This document shows positions 1,847-58,928 of a stretch of DNA of 64,000 bases, in pieces. Under the pieces are notes generated by a model that was given only the letters and a program-made list of their open reading frames with translations, was not told the origin of the DNA and did not search any database. The translations under genes were made by a program, and so were the position numbers. Origin of the DNA: Amoeboaphelidium protococcarum X5. Taxonomy: Eukaryota; Fungi; Aphelidiomycota. Within the stretch, counting starts at the first letter, position 1; each line of letters starts with the position of its first letter. The DNA lies in contig JALDTO010000098.1 of the NCBI GenBank assembly GCA_023515725.1, positions 832,164 to 896,163 on the forward strand, in the 5' to 3' direction.

Positions 1847-3035
1847 TCAATGGCCCAGTTCAGCACTTCCTTTACTGCCTGTATCTGAGCCATATCGACT
1901 CTCCATATCTTTCAGCGACTACTCCTTCTTCATCAAATCTCTGCGACGAGCCTCAAGCTCATTCTACACCTTGGTCTCCATCTCCTTAAGGCGCTGACTC
2001 TCCTTTCTCAACAGCTCCTCTTTGATCAAGTGCTACTTGGCCAGTTCATCGCGCAGTTCCACATTGTCAACATATTCCTTCGACTGATCCCTGCTCAAGC
2101 TCTTCTCCTCACTAGACAATTTCAACGTACGATAAGTCTCATACAGAGAGTCTTCCGTGATGTCTTTCAAATCCTGCAGATGAGAGTTCAGCACAGCATA
2201 GCGCAGCCTTCCAAAGTCACAGTGATTCGCATTGTCAGTCTCTGCAATTCCCCACTGATACTGACGACCTCTCACCTTCTTTCCATTAACTGGGTACGTT
2301 CCCTCAGAGCCGATGACAGTAAATGGCATCATGGCTTTCAACTCTTTATTGTCAGTAATAGTCTCCTCATCATCATTCTCTGGATCCGATGGAAAGTCGA
2401 AAACTGGAATCTTGTGATAATTAATGTCTTACATGATACGGCGCTTGAAGGTGGCAATCTCCTCAGGACTCAGAGTATCAGCTTTGGCAATCACTGGGAT
2501 GATATTAACTCTTGGAGCTAGTCTCTTCATAAACTCAATGTCAAATTATTTCAATGCATGACCAGTAGGAGCGATAAAGTACAGCAGACAATGAACTCTA
2601 TTATCCTAAAACTTTGGATTTCTCTTAATTCTAGTCTCTTCCAACAGCGCTTCGTCATACTGAGTTTCGATGTAATTGAGACATTGGATATAACTGCTTT
2701 CATTCGATAATTTACATGCAAAATCTGGAGTATAAACTATAGTTAAAGTAATTTTCACTCCCTCCTCGTCCATCTCAATGTTGTATGGAGCCAGTCCAAC
2801 CTCCTTCTCCTGCTGTGCAGATTCCGCATCAGGAACATCTCTCGGCAAGATCAATTACTGCTCACACAGAGTATTGACAAAGGTTCCTTTTCCCAATCCA
2901 GCGGCACCTACAGTATCGTTACTTCTATTGTAAATGCTACAGCACTAATGTAAATTCAAAAAGCATACCTGCAATCATGACGGTAAAGTTTAGGCCCTTC
3001 TTGGCACCTTTCCTGCGCATTGCCGAAGACTACAT
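1847..3035 (-). CDS. CDC11: Septin, Cdc11/AspA-like; one intron 2908-2968
   Basis: [18 protein letters not shown]|[15 protein letters not shown]-loop, [24 protein letters not shown] and a C-terminal coiled coil; GT-AG intron; TGA at 1847-1849. Subfamily call is from N-terminal resemblance only. Confidence 0.85.
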
Positions 3036-48460: not shown

Positions 48461-49130
48461 TCTAGCAATAATTTGATATCAGGAACAATAATTTACAATC
48501 GCGTTTGATTTGTTTTCACGAGTAAAAAGGGATCACTTTAACGGCCACGCACACGTCGTTTTTAGCATGTGTACACAATAAAAGAGGAACGTCTAACAAA
48601 AAGTGCTTCCTCTGAGAATCGAACTCAGATTTGAAGATTATGAGACTTCTGTCCTAACCCTTAGACGAAGGAAGCTTTTCTGGATGAAATGAGAAAGGCT
48701 GTAAATTAATAAACCATAATTAAGTGTGTCGCTATGCATAGTAAGGCTCGTCTCGTCTCTTAGAGTTCTATGATGATGGTACTCATAAATTCTTAAAAGA
48801 ACGTGTAGTTTCTTATGTTTCTTTTCTTACTTTGTAACCTTAACGCAAGTGATAGAGAACCGAATTATATTGCGTGTATTCTGTCCGAGTTATTTTATAC
48901 TGATAAGCTTAAACATTAAATCTCAGCTTAGCGGGTCTGTTTTGCATTCTGCGCCTCTAAGCAATCGCTTATGAAAAAAGGTAGAACCGGCTTGTTTGAA
49001 TCATCTGTATCCAGTCCGATCAATTGCCCAGAAAGTGCTGATCTGATATAACCTCTACCACTATAAAAGGATCGATAATACCCATGTCCATCTCTTTCTC
49101 CAATACCAAACATCCTGAAAGTGACCAATA

Positions 49131-50081
49131 ATGAAGACTACAATCTTGGCAACTGTTGCAACCATCATCGCGTGCTCCTCCAACTTGGTGGCTGCTGATG
49201 ATCACAAGGATTTCAAGGTGCTGGTGACTCCAAAGTTGAAGTATCATGACGCGTCCAAGTACTGCAAGATCCAAGGCTACTCTCTGATTGATGTCACTTC
49301 TGAGAACTTTAATCCACTGTCCAAATTTGTGTCCAAGAAATTGGGAAAGGATCCTGTTTGGATTCGCTCCTGGAATGGCGATGATTATGAGCAAAAGTAT
49401 GGTCAGACTCCACTGGCTTTGACTCCAATGAGCAAGTTTGGCAAAGGTTCCATCAATGTCCGCAAAGATTATGGGTTGAAACTACGTGGTATCTGCCAGC
49501 TGTATCCGCGCGTCTCCTATGGCTATAAAAAGAAGGACTATGGTAAGAAGGATTACGAGAGCAGATCTATCTCTAACAATAGTTACGGATATGATGACAA
49601 GACTGGTGTCTATAAGGTTCCTACTTATGGCTTTGATAGTGAGAAGAAGGACTATGGCTACGGCGACAAGGAGAATTATGGCTCTGGTGACAAGAAAGAT
49701 TATGGCTACGAGAACAAAAAGGAGCACGACTATGAAGTTGAAAAGCCACACTATGGATACGATGAGCCATCTTACGGATATGATCACGTAAAGTAGTATG
49801 GTGTCAGAGATTTGAAGGTTGACAACAAGGACTATGAGAAGAAGGACTATGAGAAGAAGGACTATGGCAAGAAAGACTATGGTAAAGATGAGAAGAAAGA
49901 CTATGGCAAGAAAGACTATGGTAAAGATGAGAAGAAAGACTATGGCAAGGACTATGAGAAGAAAGATTACGGCAAGGAGAAGAAGGATTATGGTAAAGAT
50001 GACAAGAAGGATTATGGCAAAGATGACAAGAAGCCTGAGGATGGTTACGAGAAGCCTTACCCAATGCCAACCTGGGAATGA
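49131..50081 (+). CDS. Secreted protein: signal peptide, C-type-lectin-like domain, KKDYG/KKDYE repeat tail (316 aa), copy 1
   Basis: ORF-track pieces 49131-49796 and 49812-50081 are one frame joined through TAG=Gln; YHDASKYC...GYSL, VWIRSW, RGIC; TATA-like tataaaag at ~49062. Confidence 0.85.
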
Positions 50082-50253
50082 TACTGATGAAATGACGCGA
50101 ATATCATGAATGTATGAATGAATGAATCAATGAAATATACTGCCATTTGAAAATATCATAAAGCCTGGTTTAAAATTTTCTTCTAATGCAAGATTAAAAA
50201 AAGTATTGCGGCGTAAAGGCCCTCAGTCATGGACTTCCTAAATCAAACTGGTT

Positions 50254-50733
50254 TCAGGAATCAGTCTTATACCCATTACGATGATTAAAGGCTTGAACAT
50301 CAATGCACCAATGATTAAGCTGACGGTTCTCATCATCCTGAGCACGCGCAATTTTCAGATCCAGAGATTCTGCAGCCGCCGACTTGTCGCGTTAGAACTA
50401 TTCACCGCTCTTCTGCAGCTCCTTCTCCATCTGCTGCAACATTGCACTGTTATCAGTAGCATCTCCTTGCTAGGCCATGACTTCAATTTAGTTACGTAAT
50501 TTCGTGATCTTGATGGCAAAAGCTTCATTTACAGTGTGATATTCGTGTTCCATCTCGTTGCGACGGGCAGCCATGCTTCTTGGTGACATGTGGACCGATA
50601 ATGGCGCGACAATGCCAGACTCGTTTGTATCGACATCAGTTCTTTGACCGTTGACAAACTTGTTCATGACGCTACCCACCAACTCACGTATTGGATCCTA
50701 TTGCTGGGTGTTGTTGTTATTTGGAACCGTCAT
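50254..50733 (-). CDS. Hypothetical coiled-coil protein (159 aa), copy 1
   Basis: ATG-to-TGA ORF under TAR=Gln, the same as 56767-57246. Confidence 0.7.
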
Positions 50734-50796
50734 TATGCGTAATTATCTGATCAAGGATCAGAACATGATGAATCGCGTCGTTGCTAATGGTTGAAA

Positions 50797-51177
50797 GCTG
50801 TCAAAAAACTGCTGGGGACCAATAGTTTGAAATACGATGACAGGTAGAAGTTTGTCGTGTTTTTTGGAGAGGCTGGAAAGTCAGGCTTTAGCAACTTTGG
50901 ACGGAAGCGGCGTGCTCCTTTGGCTGAGTTTAGACGCATATTGAACAACTATGCCATCGTTAAATTAACGCCTGAGAATTGGTCGAGTTAGAGGTGCTGT
51001 CAATGTCCTGATTTCTCAATTGGAATGAGAAACTTGGCAGATGGCTAAGACGCATTTCATTGTCATCATGGCCACCAAGCTGATGGAGATTTGAACGCCG
51101 CAGTGAATATCCTCTTCATTGGACTCTACATGATGATGAATAATGGAGTCTTCCCAAAGATCTTTGTCAATGTTTGA
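50797..51177 (+). pseudogene. 5'-truncated Fanzor/TnpB-family RuvC endonuclease (RuvC-II, Zn finger, RuvC-III)
   Basis: Frame 1 with TAR=Gln: KFVVFFGEAGKSGFSNFGRKRRAPLAEFRRILNNYAIVKLTPENWSSQRCCQC...FHCHHGHQADGDLNAAVNILFIG...*. No RuvC-I or REC/WED region is visible. Confidence 0.8.
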
Positions 51178-51564
51178 ATGAGTTTGTCACGAAAGATTTT
51201 ATTTCTTAAGCTTACTATTTTGTTGAATATTGTTATTGCATTTTACACCAATTTGTCAAATTGATTGATTTGGATTTCGCAAGCATTCTAGCGTGTCTCA
51301 TAAATCAAGCGTTCATTACAGGGAATAATCAAGCTGTCATTCAAGTCTTTAGATGTCAATGTCTTTTGGCAATGGTGTCTTGGGACGCGACATGAGATGA
51401 TGTGATCAATCAGGTTTAGCTTGTTTGCTTTGGAGGTGAGATGGCATCAGTTGACTATAAATTCCGATGAATGAAATATTTTTGTTTTGAATATGAATTT
51501 TAGTAATCTATAATACTCTCCATATCTCTGTCTGCTTCTATCACCAAGACTTGTAATATCAGTC

Positions 51565-52158
51565 ATGCTTGCTGCTAATCGTATCAATGAAAAATAAATT
51601 ATTAAAGATTATATCCACTAAGTCGGTGGATTTGATGACGGGCGTATAGTGAATCGATAAACTGGCGTCAACGTGAGAAATTTTCTGTTTCAGCACTACG
51701 GAACTTAAACGCTTGTCTTTGGAGAAATTTTTGGAGATGCGAGATGGTCTGTTGGCGGCGATGAAGATGCTGCGAGAATGGTCTTAATAAGGCTTATTCG
51801 ATATTTTCCTTCTGATATGCGAAGTTCGATGCGCAATTTGATGAAGGTGAGTCCCATGGCGTGGTGACACAAGGTGTTGGAGGAACGTTCAAGAATGGTT
51901 GCCCGCGACAAGGAGGTGCAATTAGTTTTTGAAGCTCATACTAATTACAAGGAGGTGTACGCTTAATGGTTGACTCAAACTAGTCTGCGAGGTTTTTAAT
52001 TAGTAATCGCTGCTCGTCATCGTGCTGAGTCTGATCCTGGCACTCGATTCATTTAAGAGAATGGTGAAATTGGTTAGAGTGCGTTCCGGCACTATGACAC
52101 TAAGCAAAGAAAGATTGTCTAAAAGCCTAAAAGAAAGAGATAAAAACTGCCAAGTTGA
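51565..52158 (+). pseudogene. Orphan ORF (~197 codons) with one internal TGA at 51865-51867
   Basis: Frame open from ATG 51565 to TGA 52156-52158 except one TGA, which sits inside a possible 27-nt GTGAGT...AAG segment. Confidence 0.45.
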
Positions 52159-52475
52159 TCTTCTGAAATTGAAACTTAATGATTGACATGAATTGATTTT
52201 GCTCATCGCTTTTTAACTTCCTAAACTTTTTAGCTTTCAGATATTTAATAAAACTGCTGCTGTGAGTTGAAACAGCAAATTGTAATATCTGACTTGACTT
52301 TTAAATTATGCGGGATCATAATATAATTATTGCTCGATGCTTTAAATTATGAAATACCATATTAAAGCTGTTAATTATAGGTGTATTGACAAGTAGCAGG
52401 CTGTGATGATGTGAATTTGAATAGTGAGGCAATACGTCAAATACAAGATATTGAATTGCTATATATTTTAGACAT

Positions 52476-52802
52476 TCAATCATCGAAGTTGAATCCGGTT
52501 GCAACTTTGCGTTCATTGATAGTCTGTGCAACAAACTTTCTGTCCGTATACTTACTCTTAGGAACAGAAATCAGATTCGCCATCCGTTTTGCCGTATTCT
52601 AGGATGCATTAGGATATTTGCGTTTGATGACACGATGAACAGTCTCTACCAGTTTTGAAGCAGGTGGAGTAACAGTGCGGATAATGGTTGTCTTGGCCAA
52701 CTCCTTGATTCTTGCTTTCTCTCTTTCGATCACCTTTTCAGTTACCTTCAGCTGCTTTGGAATCTTCTTGGACTTTCCTTATTGTTGCTTCTGCTTTGGC
52801 AT
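52476..52802 (-). CDS. Small highly basic orphan protein (108 aa)
   Basis: MPKQKQQQGKSKKIPKQLKVTEKVIEREKARIKELAK...GFNFDD*. Confidence 0.5.
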
Positions 52803-52912
52803 AGTTATTTGAAGAGGAAAACATCGTGTTAGAGTTGCCACGTCAAACTGATTAAAGCCGCAACGTCTAACTGATGGAATCAATCTCGTCTTACTACCGT
52901 TTTGGGAAGTGG

Positions 52913-53086
52913 TGATCCCTCTCCTGCGCGCAGCCGGCTTTTCTCAACAGTACGCTTGCCTCACAAAATTTTTTAAATTAAGGCCTCACAAAATCCTCTC
53001 CCTAGTAATTACGCTTAGCATCTTCAAAATGAGAGTACGCTGAGCGTACTCAAGCGTACAGCTGGCTACGCTACTGATCCCTCTCC
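52913..53086. repeat. Cluster of two 12-bp direct repeats and a perfect 8-bp-stem hairpin
   Basis: tgatccctctcc at 52913 and 53075; gcctcacaaaat at 52958 and 52983; gagtacgc-tga-gcgtactc at 53033-53051. Confidence 0.75.
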
Positions 53087-54657
53087 GCAGTTTAAAAGCG
53101 CTTTAATCACCTAGAAAGTCTTTCTCTCTTACTTTCGCTTATCTGGTGATCAAGATATTTGGCATCTCCAACTGACTGCCAATATCAAGAAGGTGTTCAA
53201 TGGAAGATACTACATGTTTATAATGTCTGGAATAGGGTACATCTACAGTCCACTGGTTGGTATTAATCGTCTTCTAGTTACAAGGCTGCTTGAAATTGTC
53301 TGCTGGTAAAATGCGGCGTCAACTGATATTCCATTAGCTTGGCTTTTACAAAGTTGTCTACTGGCAATCTGCTGTTGGTAATCAAGAAGTAAAAAGTTGT
53401 CCACTGATAATCACTGCTGCCGAAAAATGTATATTGATCGCTAAATGGCTAGGAGGATCCTTCTTGTAAGTCAAATTGCACTTATTGCTAATCTATTCAC
53501 TCTGCTTTAAGAAAGCTGGTACATGGACAAAAGAAGGCATGGAATCTGTGGATGGCACGACGTAGCAATGTCTGTCAGATATTTGGCGACGCGTACCTGT
53601 GGCTCGATTTCCTTTTCGTTTGCCTTTCGTTTCGAATTCTATCTTGCCTATACTGGCTTACTTTCCTTTTAATCTTGAATGTTAGCTTGACTTGACTTTC
53701 TCTTGCTTGGTTGAATTTCAAATTTGTGTTTGCCATGCATCTTTCTTCCTTTTCGGGAGTGAGATTGCCTTGTATTGGCTGCGCATAGACGACTCAGTCG
53801 TTGGGTCTTCCATTTCGGGAGTCCTGGTTCTTAACCTGCCCGCAATGGCTCGAGCGCCTAGCAGACATGGTGTGTCCGCCCAATGTCGTCACTTTCCATT
53901 GGCTGGGCTCACCCTTTGGTGTCTGCGCGTGTGAAGAAGGGGGGATCTTGAGAGGAAGGTCAGCAACGCTGTATCGAAATACACTGAATGTCAATACTGT
54001 CAATACCTAGTCAAATTCTTCAATCTTGTTCTTGGGCATAAAATTTTCAGTATTAATGTCTTTATAGATTGAGTGATGTTTATATAATATTCGGTTAAGA
54101 ACAGAATGACTTTACTTTGCACTATATCATACTTTGAGGCTTACAATGGTTAGTTAAAGCTTTCCGCAGGTGTTCAGAGAAGTTGATCTAAATGCGATAG
54201 ATAAAACACTGAACTTTGTGAAAGCCTACAGTAGTTAATTGACTAGTCTATAGGTGTGAAGTTAGGTAAAGATAAACCAAAATACAGCTTCTTAATTAGG
54301 CTCATCACTGATAGCATAAACAGTATGGAACCATTCTGAAATTCAAAGACAACCCTCTGGAAACGGATAGGTTAAAAACACGTGACTTTCATAACGAGAG
54401 CGGTAATACTCAAAATGCCAAGTACAGTAGAGATAGACAGTCGATAGCTAAGACTTTTAAAAAGGAGGATTGTAACATGATTTAAAATGATTTTGGGCAA
54501 AGTTGGCTCTATAAATTCACAATCTGTAACGTTACATGCCATGAGCCGATTCTCGTGATTTCGACACCTGGCCATCCAACAGACTTTTCGTTGATATTGA
54601 CACTTTCTTTTCACCTTTTTCACTGATATAAAATAGATTTAGATATTAGAGTGAATT

Positions 54658-55326
54658 ATGAAGAGCTTTTTGAACATTGCAATTATAGTTTCAGTAGTCT
54701 CAAGTGTCCCTCTTCCTGGTAAATAGGAACAGGGTGGCGTTGGCAAGGCGGGTTTCGGTGGCTTTGATGTTACTTAACCAGCTCAGTCGCAATAGGCGCA
54801 CCAAGTAGTTGGGTATCCTTATGCCTCAGCTGGTACCAGTTTCTAGTATCCACCGTAATAGCATGCTGATAATGGTGCAAGGGTTTATGGTCAAAGAAAT
54901 CAGGTATTTGGGACTAGAGCATTTCAAGCTTAGTATCCCACCATGTAAGGAATGTAGCATGACCATGACGCGTCAAAATTTCACTAGCATCACCACTATG
55001 GATAAAGATCGCGTAATGTTTAAGCTTTCTAAGTTGTTAGTTAGGACTCCCGTTAAGGCCATGGAAGAAATTATGGCTCAGTGGTACCTTTTCCTGATTT
55101 GGGCTATGCATCCAATCCTGTTGCACCATTGCCTGATTTATCGCCTGTTCTAACTGCCAATGTTGCTGGTCAAGGTCAAGGCATAGGCTCTTTGGGTCCC
55201 GATTATTTTGCTCGTCCTGACATTGATGGTGCCACTGGAAATCTGCCAGATACTCTCGGAGACGGCGGTAATCTCGATTTTGGGGCTGCAGATTGTGACT
55301 GTGCCGGCTGTTGTGTCATTTCATGA
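54658..55326 (+). CDS. Secreted Gly/Gln/Pro-rich orphan protein ending in CDCAGCCVIS (CaaX-like), 222 aa
   Basis: Signal peptide MKSFLNIAIIVSVVSSVP; single frame to TGA TGA TGA; TATA-like tataaaa upstream. Confidence 0.75.
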
Positions 55327-55628
55327 TGATGATCAATAATAGAGTATATAAGTTACAAAAATGTTTTTAGCTTTGAAAATGGCATTTGTCGATTGACCAG
55401 TTTCCAATCTGAGCGATTGCGACTGTCAGTCAGTCTCGACTCTGTTTTCATAGCATTACGGGGTATGGAGTGAACATGGAATAAATCCTAGTAGGACAGT
55501 CCCCTCTAATGTCATCGATTAAAAAGTTAAAGTGGATTATCTGAGGACTGCCGTCTTAGTATGGCATTTGATACCGGAAGACTAGAATAATCGATTATTA
55601 TTCGGGTCCGCGTTCTATTCAAGTAGGT

Positions 55629-56126
55629 ATGACGAAGAGTCTGGATGTTGCCTGCTATGTATTAGTCAGCTTGTTGTCTATACAAAATATCGTAGGAAAC
55701 GCACTTCGGTCTATACAATAAGAGTTATGGCTCGCGCCGGTTAATGGCCTTTGGACTGGTCTCCTCAAATCTTCTGGTAATCAAAGGCTTTCACCGTGCT
55801 CTGGGTTTGCCCCCATTGTTGTCGAGGAATCCACCTTTGCTTATGCAAAATTATTAGATGAGATATTGGAGGTGCCCTACATGTGCACGGTTTCTTACGA
55901 CGTGAGTGCAGAACAGATTATACAGATGAAGTAAGCTCAATGTGTTGCCCATACCAATTTCTTTGTTAACCACGCCGAGGTAAATGAGATCCGCAAGCAT
56001 TTATCAAATTGGCGTTTGTATAAACTAAGTGATAGGGATGAATATTTCGCAATAATTATTCCAAAGGAAGTACCAGCGTACTCGTGTTGCTGTTTGAACA
56101 AGCGTCTTTACTTAGAATATGCATGA
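55629..56126 (+). CDS. Orphan 165 aa protein with hydrophobic N-terminus (possibly secreted)
   Basis: ATG-to-TGA ORF under TAR=Gln: MTKSLDVACYVLVSLLSIQNIVG...CCCLNKRLYLEYA*. Confidence 0.45.
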
Positions 56127-56766
56127 AGCAGTAACTACAGACAGCTAATGCTTAAAGTAAACGAATCCGATTCAACTCTACGGCACTGCAAATTTCCGGT
56201 AAATATCGTACAACCTGAGCGGCATTTTGATCGAGTTGCGTCTGTGAATGGCACCATACATGTTAAGTACGTAAAGATCGTTTTCAAATTTATCTGTTGA
56301 AATCTCCAGTCGTTTAGCACCGTACATCATGATATACAGGCAGGGTCCAGTATATTCAGAACTGAGTGGGTAGTTGCACTAGAATTAGCCTTATACTCAC
56401 CCGGCTCTTTGAAATGATATCATTGAGAGTACTGTGTATCCAACCACTCACGTACGCTCAGAAGAGAAGCCAAGCTACAGCACGGCGAGCCATCTACAAT
56501 GCTGCGCTCTGCCAGAGGAAGCGCATTGGTTACTAGTATAATAAAGGGAACTCACCGGGGAAATTATAGATCACCATTGATTGAGAATAGGTGTCATATC
56601 GGAAACAAATAAAATCTTTCGTCTTCCAAATGGATGGAATGGATGTTTCAGCCGTCAAACAGGAGCCGTCCGCGGTCCGCGGTTTTTTGAAGCGACGAGC
56701 CCGTTTCAACCATTAGCAACGACGCGATTCATCATGTTCTGATCCTTGATCAGATAATAACGCATA

Positions 56767-57246
56767 ATGACGGTTCCAAATAACAACAACACCCAGCAAT
56801 AGGATCCAATACGTGAGTTGGTGGGTAGCGTCATGAACAAGTTTGTCAACGGTCAAAGAACTGATGTCGATACAAACGAGTCTGGCATTGTCGCGCCATT
56901 ATCGGTCCACATGTCACCAAGAAGCATGGCTGCCCGTCGCAACGAGATGGAACACGAATATCACACTGTAAATGAAGCTTTTGCCATCAAGATCACGAAA
57001 TTACGTAACTAAATTGAAGTCATGGCCTAGCAAGGAGATGCTACTGATAACAGTGCAATGTTGCAGCAGATGGAGAAGGAGCTGCAGAAGAGCGGTGAAT
57101 AGTTCTAACGCGACAAGTCGGCGGCTGCAGAATCTCTGGATCTGAAAATTGCGCGTGCTCAGGATGATGAGAACCGTCAGCTTAATCATTGGTGCATTGA
57201 TGTTCAAGCCTTTAATCATCGTAATGGGTATAAGACTGATTCCTGA
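56767..57246 (+). CDS. Hypothetical coiled-coil protein (159 aa), copy 2
   Basis: MTVPNNNNTQQQDPIRELVGSVMNKF...NGYKTDS*. Confidence 0.7.
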
Positions 57247-57418
57247 AACCAGTTTGATTTAGGAAGTCCATGACTGAGGGCCTTTACGCCGCAATACTTT
57301 TTTTAATCTTGCATTAGAAGAAAATTTTAAACCAGGCTTTATGATATTTTCAAATGGCAGTATATTTCATTGATTCATTCATTCATACATTCATGATATT
57401 CGCGTCATTTCATCAGTA

Positions 57419-58330
57419 TCATTCCCAGGTTGGCATTGGGTAAGGCTTCTCGTAACCATCCTCAGGCTTCTTGTCATCTTTGCCATAATCCTTCTTGTCA
57501 TCTTTACCATAATCCTTCTTCTCCTTGCCGTAATCTTTCTTCTCATAGTCCTTGCCATAGTCTTTCTTCTCATCTTTACCATAGTCTTTCTTGCCATAGT
57601 CCTTCTTCTCATAGTCCTTCTTCTCATAGTCCTTGTTGTCAACCTTCAAATCTCTGACACCATACTACTTTACGTGATCATATCCGTAAGATGGCTCATC
57701 GTATCCATAGTGTGGCTTTTCAACTTCATAGTCGTGCTCCTTTTTGTTCTCGTAGCCATAATCTTTCTTGTCACCAGAGCCATAATTCTCCTTGTCGCCG
57801 TAGCCATAGTCCTTCTTCTCACTATCATAGCCATAAGTAGGAACCTTATAGACACCAGTCTTATCATCATATCCGTAACTATTGTTAGAGATAGATCTGC
57901 TCTCGTAATCCTTCTTACCATAGTCCTTCTTTTTATAGCCATAGGAGACGCGCGGATACAGCTGGCAGATACCACGTAGTTTCAACCCATAATCTTTGCG
58001 GACATTGATGGAACCTTTGCCAAACTTGCTCATTGGAGTCAAAGCCAGTGGAGTCTGACCATACTTTTGCTCATAATCATCGCCATTCCAGGAGCGAATC
58101 CAAACAGGATCCTTTCCCAATTTCTTGGACACAAATTTGGACAGTGGATTAAAGTTCTCAGAAGTGACATCAATCAGAGAGTAGCCTTGGATCTTGCAGT
58201 ACTTGGACGCGTCATGATACTTCAACTTTGGAGTCACCAGCACCTTGAAATCCTTGTGATCATCAGCAGCCACCAAGTTGGAGGAGCACGCGATGATGGT
58301 TGCAACAGTTGCCAAGATTGTAGTCTTCAT
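57419..58330 (-). CDS. Secreted lectin-like/KKDYG-repeat protein (303 aa), copy 2
   Basis: As copy 1, minus one 13-aa repeat unit and with one F-to-Y change. Confidence 0.85.
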
Positions 58331-58928
58331 TATTGGTCACTTTCAGGATGTTTGGTATTGGAGAAAGAGATGGACATGGTATCATTGATCCTTTTATAGT
58401 GGTAGAGGTTATATCAGATCAATACTGTTTTAGAAATCTGTCAGACTGGATGATCTAGTAAATCAACAAGAGGCTTCAGGACTCATCAAACTGGCATTAC
58501 AGTTCAGCCTATCAATCATAATCGCATCACTTACAAACCAGAGTTAAGAAATTAATACACTACTTATGGTCCAATTGACTGGCTGTATCGCAATAAGCCA
58601 AACAGCACCTGGATTCGAAAACTACGATAGAGTTAATCGAGATAAGTCTCTCAACAGATCCATCATTAAGTTTACGGAAGACGCGATTTTAAGACCTGCA
58701 ATCGTGATGAACTATATACACTTTAACAATAATGCCCAGTCTTGCTAGTTAAATCATTAGTTGAATTAAATGAGGAAATTATAAACTTGTCTTGTAACTC
58801 TTTCTGGACATCGCCGTGAGCGGAAACTCTTTCTCCTCCTCACCGTATCCAACGATACAGTACAGATTGCGCTCAGTATACGATGTAACGACGTAGGAAG
58901 CAGTATCATTTATAGAGTCAAGATAAAG

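Follow-up and report, generated by a model that had tools for sequence, protein, structure and literature searches.

A truncated Fanzor1 gene, probably the dead 3′ remnant of an old resident subfamily, in Amoeboaphelidium protococcarum

The window analyzed here is a stretch of 64,000 nucleotides (C98:832164-896163) from Amoeboaphelidium protococcarum X5. When TAA and TAG are read as Gln, it contains 76 open reading frames (ORFs) of at least 200 amino acids, compared with 7 under the standard code; the assignment of UAR to Gln has been published for this species (PMC5304391). Read in this code, the plus strand from 50797 to 51174 is an open frame of 126 amino acids that represents the C-terminal end of a Fanzor1 protein and is closed by a TGA stop codon at 51175-51177. 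The first-pass annotation of the window had described a Fanzor-type fragment at this place, and on recheck all of its coordinates and motif positions proved correct. The features of the fragment are as follows:

50797-51177, plus strand: Fanzor1 3′ fragment, subfamily D1 (126 amino acids plus TGA), without RuvC-I, REC, WED or an upstream ATG
50866-50868, plus strand: Gly of FVVFFG at the canonical RuvC-II Glu position, aligning with the YG of the Fanzor1 profile
50974-50976, plus strand: alternative RuvC-II catalytic Glu (GAG), 36 residues past the Gly (definition in PMC10530073)
50989-50991, plus strand: TAG encoding the Gln of SSQxC; also TAG in the contig C155 copy and in the other strain, CAG in the D3 copies
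50995-51075, plus strand: zinc finger, CCQC (50995-51006) and CHHGH (51061-51075), with the His kept in all D copies
51088-51090, plus strand: RuvC-III catalytic Asp (GAT) in GDLNAA, with Gly for the usual Arg, placed by motif alignment and the Fanzor1 profile

Other TAR codons in the fragment are a TAG at 50845 and a TAA at 51046. With PF07282, the fragment scored 31.8 bits (cut-off, 26.3 bits; E = 3e-6 per genome), and with an outside Fanzor1 profile, made from 7 Fanzor1-like proteins from other sources, it scored 21.8 bits, the best of 2000 shuffled sequences reaching at most 5.4 bits. Taken together, the PF07282 score and the comparison with shuffled sequences show that the homology is more than chance. 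The suggested identity as a Fanzor thus held up in the profile search and could be narrowed to Fanzor1.

Fanzors have a rearranged RuvC-II, in which Gly or Pro occupies the canonical Glu position and an alternative Glu lies ~45 residues further on (PMC10530073). The fragment has both of the residues by which Jiang 2023 recognized Fanzors, the Gly at 50866 and the Glu at 50974, and both align to the Fanzor1 profile, as the first-pass annotation had proposed; the Asp that it had assigned to RuvC-III is likewise present and aligned. The Glu that directly follows FFG was considered as the catalytic residue and rejected, since it is not conserved in D2 and D3. The motif of Bao and Jurka, [TS][TS]xx and then the zinc finger (PF07282), is present as SSQR-CCQC. 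Their RuvC-I Asp, 125 to 275 residues before [TS][TS]xx, is absent from the truncated window copy and is found at that spacing in the C155 paralogue, where Asp 332 precedes SS 519 by 187 residues. The C-terminal template expected of TnpB and Fanzor proteins applies only in part: the CCQC half of the finger follows it, but the second half is C-x3-H (CHHGH) rather than CxxC, and RD at RuvC-III has become GD, the Asp being kept and aligned and the Arg replaced with Gly throughout D. Because the His is conserved in all D copies, the D zinc finger is probably C3H rather than C4, with His as the probable fourth ligand. The Gln of SSQxC, described earlier as conserved and encoded by TAG, does have a TAG codon here but is not invariant, the D2 copies having Lys.

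A complete D-E-D triad in a single translatable ORF is absent from the fragment, where the RuvC-I and N-terminal lobe are both missing, as had been noticed before. The open frame reaches 70 codons into the adjoining repeat arm, and the first ATG comes no earlier than 51025. The earlier judgment that the copy is probably inactive therefore stands, as it has no RuvC-I and no upstream ATG.

The fragment is part of a larger insertion, the anatomy of which is as follows:

49009-50796, plus strand: left arm of an inverted repeat (1.75 kb), made up of a secreted-type gene with KKDY repeats, orphan DNA and Y
50132-50142, plus strand: left copy of an 11-nt direct repeat, GAAATA(T/C)ACTG, single copy in the empty sites and 10/11 identical to the right copy
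50143-50329, no strand assigned: orphan DNA of 187 nt, found only in the two arms, a possible left part of the element
50330-50796, minus strand: copy of the local host gene Y, in the place of the 5′ three quarters of the Fanzor gene
50792-50796, plus strand: 5-nt microhomology TGAAA at the truncation junction, common to the arm and the Fanzor paralogue
51178-51275, plus strand: AT-rich non-coding DNA after the stop codon (98 nt), common to the C155 copy, no significant fold
51276-53770, no strand assigned: nested insert of 2.5 kb, standing for ~80 to 86 nt of the C155 copy
51288-52182: decayed ORF Z in the nested insert, 76% like DNA beside a D2 fragment on contig C264
52926-53079: 150-bp dispersed repeat in the nested insert, with three more genome copies, 76 to 95% alike
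53771-53975, plus strand: GC-rich (56%) segment R, ~200 nt, 85% like the end of the C155 insertion
53976-53986, plus strand: right copy of the 11-nt direct repeat, where host sequence resumes as in the empty site
56704-58451, minus strand: right arm of the inverted repeat

The length of the insertion, 3,844 bp, follows from the empty sites, as the homeologous locus on contig C207 joins 50131 directly to 53976, and the second strain has the same joint. No contig of the second strain covers 51340-52923, and such contigs show presence better than absence. The fragment had been said to be cut at the inverted-repeat arm, and this was borne out: the arm ends at 50796, the similarity to the paralogue starts at 50792, and the two arms differ by 1 mismatch in the inner 909 nt beside the junction. 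Words spanning the junction occur at single-copy depth in DNA contigs from the same sample.

Alignment of the copy ends, proposed in the first-pass annotation, located the right end by means of the C155 insertion (767640-771493; L055, L041), which is occupied in the other strain as well (L056). There, the counterpart of R lies 80 nt further on than the 3′ DNA after the stop codon. Since R stops no more than ~20 nt from the insertion boundary, at C155 and in the window alike, its end (53956-53975 in the window) is the probable right end of the element, which would thus not lie beside the stop codon. At C155, ~415 nt of host DNA (the 3′ part of a gene and its UTR) is found on both sides of the insertion; the empty homeologue (C146:1019626-1022988; L075) has a single host gene. 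Between the insertion ends we found no terminal inverted repeat (TIR), and the duplications, of 11 and ~415 nt, are not of a fixed length. A test for Helitron1 and Helitron2 features, which covered the 3′ side (the left end may be lost), gave no shared hairpin with a stem of at least 5 bp at the end and no CTRR. Rfam gave no match on 49000-58500, and the 150-bp dispersed repeat had no Rfam or tRNA match.

Several further observations concern the surroundings. Both D1 insertions stand directly behind secreted-type KKDY-repeat genes (window 49125-50078; C155:766742-767515), with GAAT repeats in the 3′ UTR of these genes at both sites; this could reflect either chance or a target preference. There is a weak direct likeness between part of the orphan left DNA (50203-50239) and the beginning of R (53771-53810), reached by 1 of 200 shuffles in one of three tests. 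Homologues of ORF Z (window 51565-52158; L051:2370-2900) adjoin D2 copies, lying upstream of the copy on C264:1214k, and weak homologues lie 1 kb downstream of D2 on C69 and C264:288k. ORF Z, which had no Pfam or Atlas match, is possibly a cargo of D elements. At C207:34750-43430, the homeologue of the inverted-repeat cassette has an 8.7-kb insertion of its own at the position of window 54612-54614. A minus-strand tRNA-Met(CAT) gene, at 48603-48675, is 330 nt outside the left arm and is also present in the homeologue.

PF07282 recognizes 41 places in the genome, 36 of them over the cut-off, which sort into at least 7 lineages, labeled A to G; the RuvC-II piece of the window fragment alone matches 11 places. 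In a midpoint-rooted tree that included the outside proteins and no named Fz1, Fz2 or TnpB references, the window and C155 copies group together (support, 100/99) within a D clade (100/98), and lineages C, D and F are separated from A, B, E, G and the outside proteins by a 100/99 split. The claim that a Fanzor family exists in this lineage is thereby supported.

The assignment of D to Fanzor1 comes from a chain of profile comparisons rather than from a direct structure. An alignment of D proteins matched the outside Fanzor1 profile in HHalign from the REC lobe through to the C terminus, a span of 448 columns (99%, E = 4e-18), and a profile of the outside proteins plus three A-type proteins matched SpuFz1 with an E value of 4e-24, TnpB and Cas12 chains giving 1e-8 or weaker. 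The top structures for an AlphaFold model of family A (pLDDT 67) were SpuFz1, GtFz1 and PpFz1. In the ESM Atlas, the first 467 residues of the D1 protein, which exclude the finger, matched DUF8286 clusters from Mucoromycota and giant viruses at 0.97. The window fragment itself is 86% identical in protein sequence to the C155 copy, and it is through such paralogues, with their large REC/WED lobe, that similarity to Fanzor1 over the full length is shown. Folding the D1 protein with AlphaFold from the single sequence gave no usable model (pLDDT 32), and individual stop-free D pieces drew no matches, or weak ones at best, from Pfam and PDB; the database searches used such pieces separately, and read-throughs, with an X for each frame break, were scored in scripts. 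On these comparisons, C, D and F make up a divergent Fanzor1 branch in a genome with at least 7 Fanzor1 lineages.

The longer homologue that had been sought is the nearest copy, C155:769379-771148, which is 87% identical in DNA sequence and retains RuvC-I (FIGFDGN). It has a 1-nt deletion in the finger, confirmed in read contigs; several frameshifts and TGA stops interrupt its orthologue in the other strain (GCA_023515745.1, L056). No D1 copy other than those of the window and C155 turned up in the assembly or the read contigs, and a genome search for an orphan D1 5′ half found none. Frameshifts also mark the D copies on C69, C264:288k, C155:119k and C98:1474k; those on C264:1213k, C207:1017k, C214, C233 and C212 are partial, and 5 further places match part of the D1 protein only. 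Every D locus examined, several of them viewed within ~1.5 kb of the match, is truncated, frameshifted or interrupted by TGA stops. Thus, the suggestion that intact copies might exist elsewhere is right for the genome, through families A, B, C, F and G, but not for D. Most D copies are paired and have long flanks in common, as expected of old duplicated relics; no 3′ end is common between subfamilies.

The window copy is the best preserved of the D copies, with 126 codons free of stops and frameshifts. Its branch has 6 synonymous and 6 non-synonymous changes (pN/pS, 0.27; P = 0.024), these being 12 changes only, on a branch pooled with the ancestor of C155 and L056. By this measure, purifying selection is shown to have acted on the lineage of the window copy, which, being undecayed, probably died recently. 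Two other observations on D loci stand apart from this. Between the strains, ~190 codons around RuvC-I of the same dead gene are identical (L045:66-1434 versus L056), whereas the parts flanking this region differ by ~10%, which hints at gene conversion or introgression. A tRNA-adjacent habit of D was rejected: a tRNA is near only two D loci of the genome (C155 and L054), the C155 tRNA is found in the empty site too, and the L056 orthologue likewise has the tRNA.

The proposal that the element evolved in the host's code was upheld by the D copies, in which conserved Gln columns have TAG in some copies and CAR in others: for SSQxC, D1 uses TAG and D3 uses CAG (D2 having Lys), and for an HQ pair, the Gln codon is CAA in D1 and D3, TAG in D2 and CAG in D4. 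Across D, 31 of 63 Gln codons are TAR, a share at the level of the host ORFs (380 of 660; P = 0.23), whereas the GC-richer family A has 5 of 22 (P = 0.002). With TAR use at the host level in D and well below it in A, D is likely to be an old resident in the TAR = Gln code and A a recent arrival.

The claim that standard-code surveys would miss the element is true only for D. Standard-code translation breaks the fragment into pieces no longer than 47 amino acids, and NCBI models of the D1 gene have no Pfam match because they splice out the Glu, the zinc finger and RuvC-III; KAI3637759.1, the model of the closest paralogue (C155), does have Gln where the DNA has TAR. The intact family A, in contrast, is already in the NCBI nr database as correctly translated proteins of 696 to 704 amino acids with PF07282, unnamed. 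The survey of Jiang 2023 searched annotated proteins, and the Saito 2023 supplement lists at least two Fanzors of Amoeboaphelidium occidentale, KAI3658238.1 and KAI3657820.1. A literature search found no paper with both Fanzor and Amoeboaphelidium in the main text.

Subfamily D resembles SpuFz1 of Spizellomyces punctatus (PDB 8GKH/9CEU; PMC10432273, PMC11423790) in the RuvC-II Gly and downstream Glu, the zinc finger, the RuvC-III Asp with its NAAxNI helix, and, in the longer D copies, the REC/WED architecture; as with Spu-1, there are many partial copies per genome. Unlike SpuFz1, the window copy is a stump of 126 amino acids, and D has C-x3-5-H for the second CxxC, GD for RD, an acidic insertion before RuvC-I and TAR for Gln, and lacks the 30-nt TIR, the TA site and the compact omegaRNA region of 80 to 90 nt. 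The non-autonomous Fanzor1 elements CRe-1, -2 and -3 of Chlamydomonas show 5′ truncation, target site duplications of 7 to 19 and up to 443 bp, and captured 5′ bits (Bao and Jurka 2013; PMC3627910). The D1 insertions share with them a truncated 5′ side with foreign DNA, an intact 3′ side and target duplications that vary in length (11 nt in the window, ~415 nt at C155), but, unlike them, showed no Helitron2 hairpins or asymmetric TIRs (ATIRs) and no TTTT before the duplication, and number two copies rather than hundreds. The listed A. occidentale Fanzors come from the same genus; the two species are reported to stand far apart (PMC10608142). Family A of the same genome belongs to the same superfamily and uses the same code as D, but is young (98 to 99% identical), intact, 696 amino acids long and on the other side of the 100/99 split.

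We consider it quite probable that the window copy is a dead 3′ remnant of Fanzor1 subfamily D, an old aphelid resident, beheaded by an exchange between the repeat arms. The intact ancestor would have resembled SpuFz1, in which the catalytic residues are D383, E541 and D606 (PMC11423790) and the omegaRNA comes from the right end of the element (PMC10432273): an omegaRNA from its 3′ end would have guided a RuvC cut, by a D-E-D triad, next to a TAM. By this analogy, we infer that the ancestor was an RNA-guided DNA endonuclease, one whose finger and RD motif deviate from the known pattern. A complete D1 element would have inserted in the 3′ UTR of the KKDY gene. Then, very recently, the inverted arms would have undergone gene conversion or a template switch that overwrote the first three quarters of the Fanzor gene with local gene Y and rejoined at TGAAA. 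As encoded, the remnant cannot cut DNA, because it has neither the RuvC-I Asp, one of the three catalytic residues, nor the lobe that binds guide and TAM; without these, and having lost its start codon with the 5′ part, it would now be decaying. This order, insertion and then conversion, is reconstructed from two strains and one homeologue and is favored by the lack of a donor copy, the undecayed tail and the near-identity of the arms.

The 5′ part could also have been missing from the start. A copy born truncated, by one-ended copying of the break-repair type from the right end with capture of foreign DNA on the 5′ side, would differ from the main reading only in how the 5′ part was lost, the arm match being made later when the junction was copied to the other arm. 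The intact 3′ end common to both D1 copies, the 11-nt direct repeat here and the ~415-nt duplication at C155 relative to its empty homeologue, the lack of TIRs and the same pattern in CRe-1, -2 and -3 (PMC3627910) all speak for this possibility. However, we hold it to be somewhat unlikely: despite the undecayed state of the copy, neither the assembly nor the read contigs contain an intact donor; neither a Helitron2 hairpin or ATIR nor a TTTT target is present; and in strain 2, gene Y occupies its ancestral position at the other arm, in keeping with that arm as the source of a conversion. Whichever way the 5′ part was lost, the intact 3′ end, the variable and even very long target duplications and the foreign 5′ DNA at both D1 insertions suggest copying into a DNA break, not cut-and-paste; two cases cannot establish Fanzor as the maker of the break. 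A bolder proposal, which we rate as unlikely, is that D is an aphelid-restricted, code-adapted lineage without transposase or TIRs that was copied into breaks made by Fanzor itself and was kept under selection until the window copy, perhaps the last working one, was beheaded. Such a spread would explain duplications as unlike as 11 and ~415 nt, and wild strains may then carry a live D copy. Finally, the junction might be an artifact of assembly, a repeat arm glued to the tail of an intact Fanzor gene. It does coincide with the end of a repeat that is near-perfect, the arm is present on a leftover contig of 1 kb (C37), and no single listed contig spans the whole stretch. The overlap of 5 nt, however, is far below the assembly word length, and an independently assembled read contig from the same sample (50767-53004) shows no difference and single-copy depth, with 30 letters to the left of 50797 where our rule asked for 31. 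The only alternative 5′ neighbor is C155-type sequence, and no orphan 5′ half turned up, so that we regard an artifact as very improbable.

The class of the protein and a possible afterlife of its RNA raise two more alternatives. PF07282 and the C-terminal motif alone cannot tell Fanzor1 from Fanzor2 of the IS607 type or from bacterial TnpB, but an origin from either of the latter is scarcely credible, as the longer D copies align with Fanzor1 across REC/WED and RuvC, the N-terminal part of D1 matches Atlas clusters of the Fanzor1 type, and, for the related family A, Fz1 structures rank far above ApmFz2. Codons and flanking DNA are of the host type, and no serine recombinase is found near D loci, a search for a TnpA neighbor among the short, decayed stop-free pieces of the neighboring ORFs having given no Pfam match. 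As for RNA, R is the only omegaRNA candidate of the locus. A coding role for R was rejected, the listed differences falling on all three codon positions. An omegaRNA directly after the stop codon was rejected as well, the homology to C155 stopping at 51275 with a fold z score of +1.4, and the last 14 to 20 nt of the insertion do not significantly resemble a guide or flank from the C155 site (P ~ 0.06). Because ghost loci produce omegaRNAs in S. punctatus (PMC10432273), R (53771-53975) might be transcribed as a ghost omegaRNA that serves, in trans, an intact Fanzor from sister family C or F, a reading helped by its GC richness, its end at the insertion boundary, the retention of three copies and the unbroken frames in the sister families. 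It is improbable nonetheless, for the fold of R is no better than that of shuffled sequences (z = -0.5) and covariation is slight, Rfam and the 3′ regions of other families yielded nothing similar, and the 2.5-kb insert stands between R and the stop codon.

The locus is thus a real relic, ordinary and of a kind already known, whose insertion anatomy is of mild interest. What is new here is the divergent Fanzor1 subfamily D in the algal parasite A. protococcarum, Fanzors as a kind being already known. Current gene models and searches based on ORFs cope poorly with the Fanzor1 branch (C, D and F) that the locus marks. An empty site is known for each D1 insertion, and one insertion has a ~415-nt duplication, so that the two form a natural insertion record that bears on a question standing since 2013, namely, how Fanzor elements that lack ends insert. 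TAR usage may be readable as a residence clock, with the old D at the host level and the young A well below it.

Those who seek an active enzyme should turn to family A, B or F rather than to the window copy. Family A has four unbroken genes of 696 codons, 98 to 99% identical, with all three catalytic residues (L003 to L006; C154:217483-219567, C212:54234-56318, C205:401784-403868 and C13:151529-153613), whose proteins include KAI3633313.1, KAI3641888.1, KAI3638071.1 and KAI3630610.1. It has a conserved 90-nt 3′ region that ends sharply before TA at at least 12 unrelated sites, and the four genes, judged by their sequences, are the most promising candidates if an active system is sought. No relative of the family A tail was found in viral contigs, and phages gave weak TnpB-like matches only. 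The nearest unbroken kin of D are, besides C, in lineage F. Unbroken frames of at least 665 to 698 amino acids at L067 (C155:875800-878000), L068 (C212:695000-697100) and L070 (C207:293400-295500) represent Fanzor1 lineages F and G and have catalytic motifs. Family C (L012, L016, L017 and L018) has ~600 nt of conserved non-coding DNA 3′ of the stop codon, much longer than the SpuFz1 omegaRNA. Family B (L023 to L025; L019, L020 and L029) has sharp 3′ ends, which in L023 to L025 are CTAG and Helitron-like. The family A genes have ~1.2 kb of upstream sequence in common, including the reverse-strand tail of a family G Fanzor, and just past the end of the family A gene on C13 (L005, ~1850-2200, minus strand) the element sits inside a decayed D-like Fanzor gene. 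A 708-amino-acid model that clustered with a family A fragment (P0038; KAI3635929.1) has a KDZ (Kyakuja-Dileera-Zisupton) transposase domain (E = 7e-28) and is either a fusion or a gene-model chimera.
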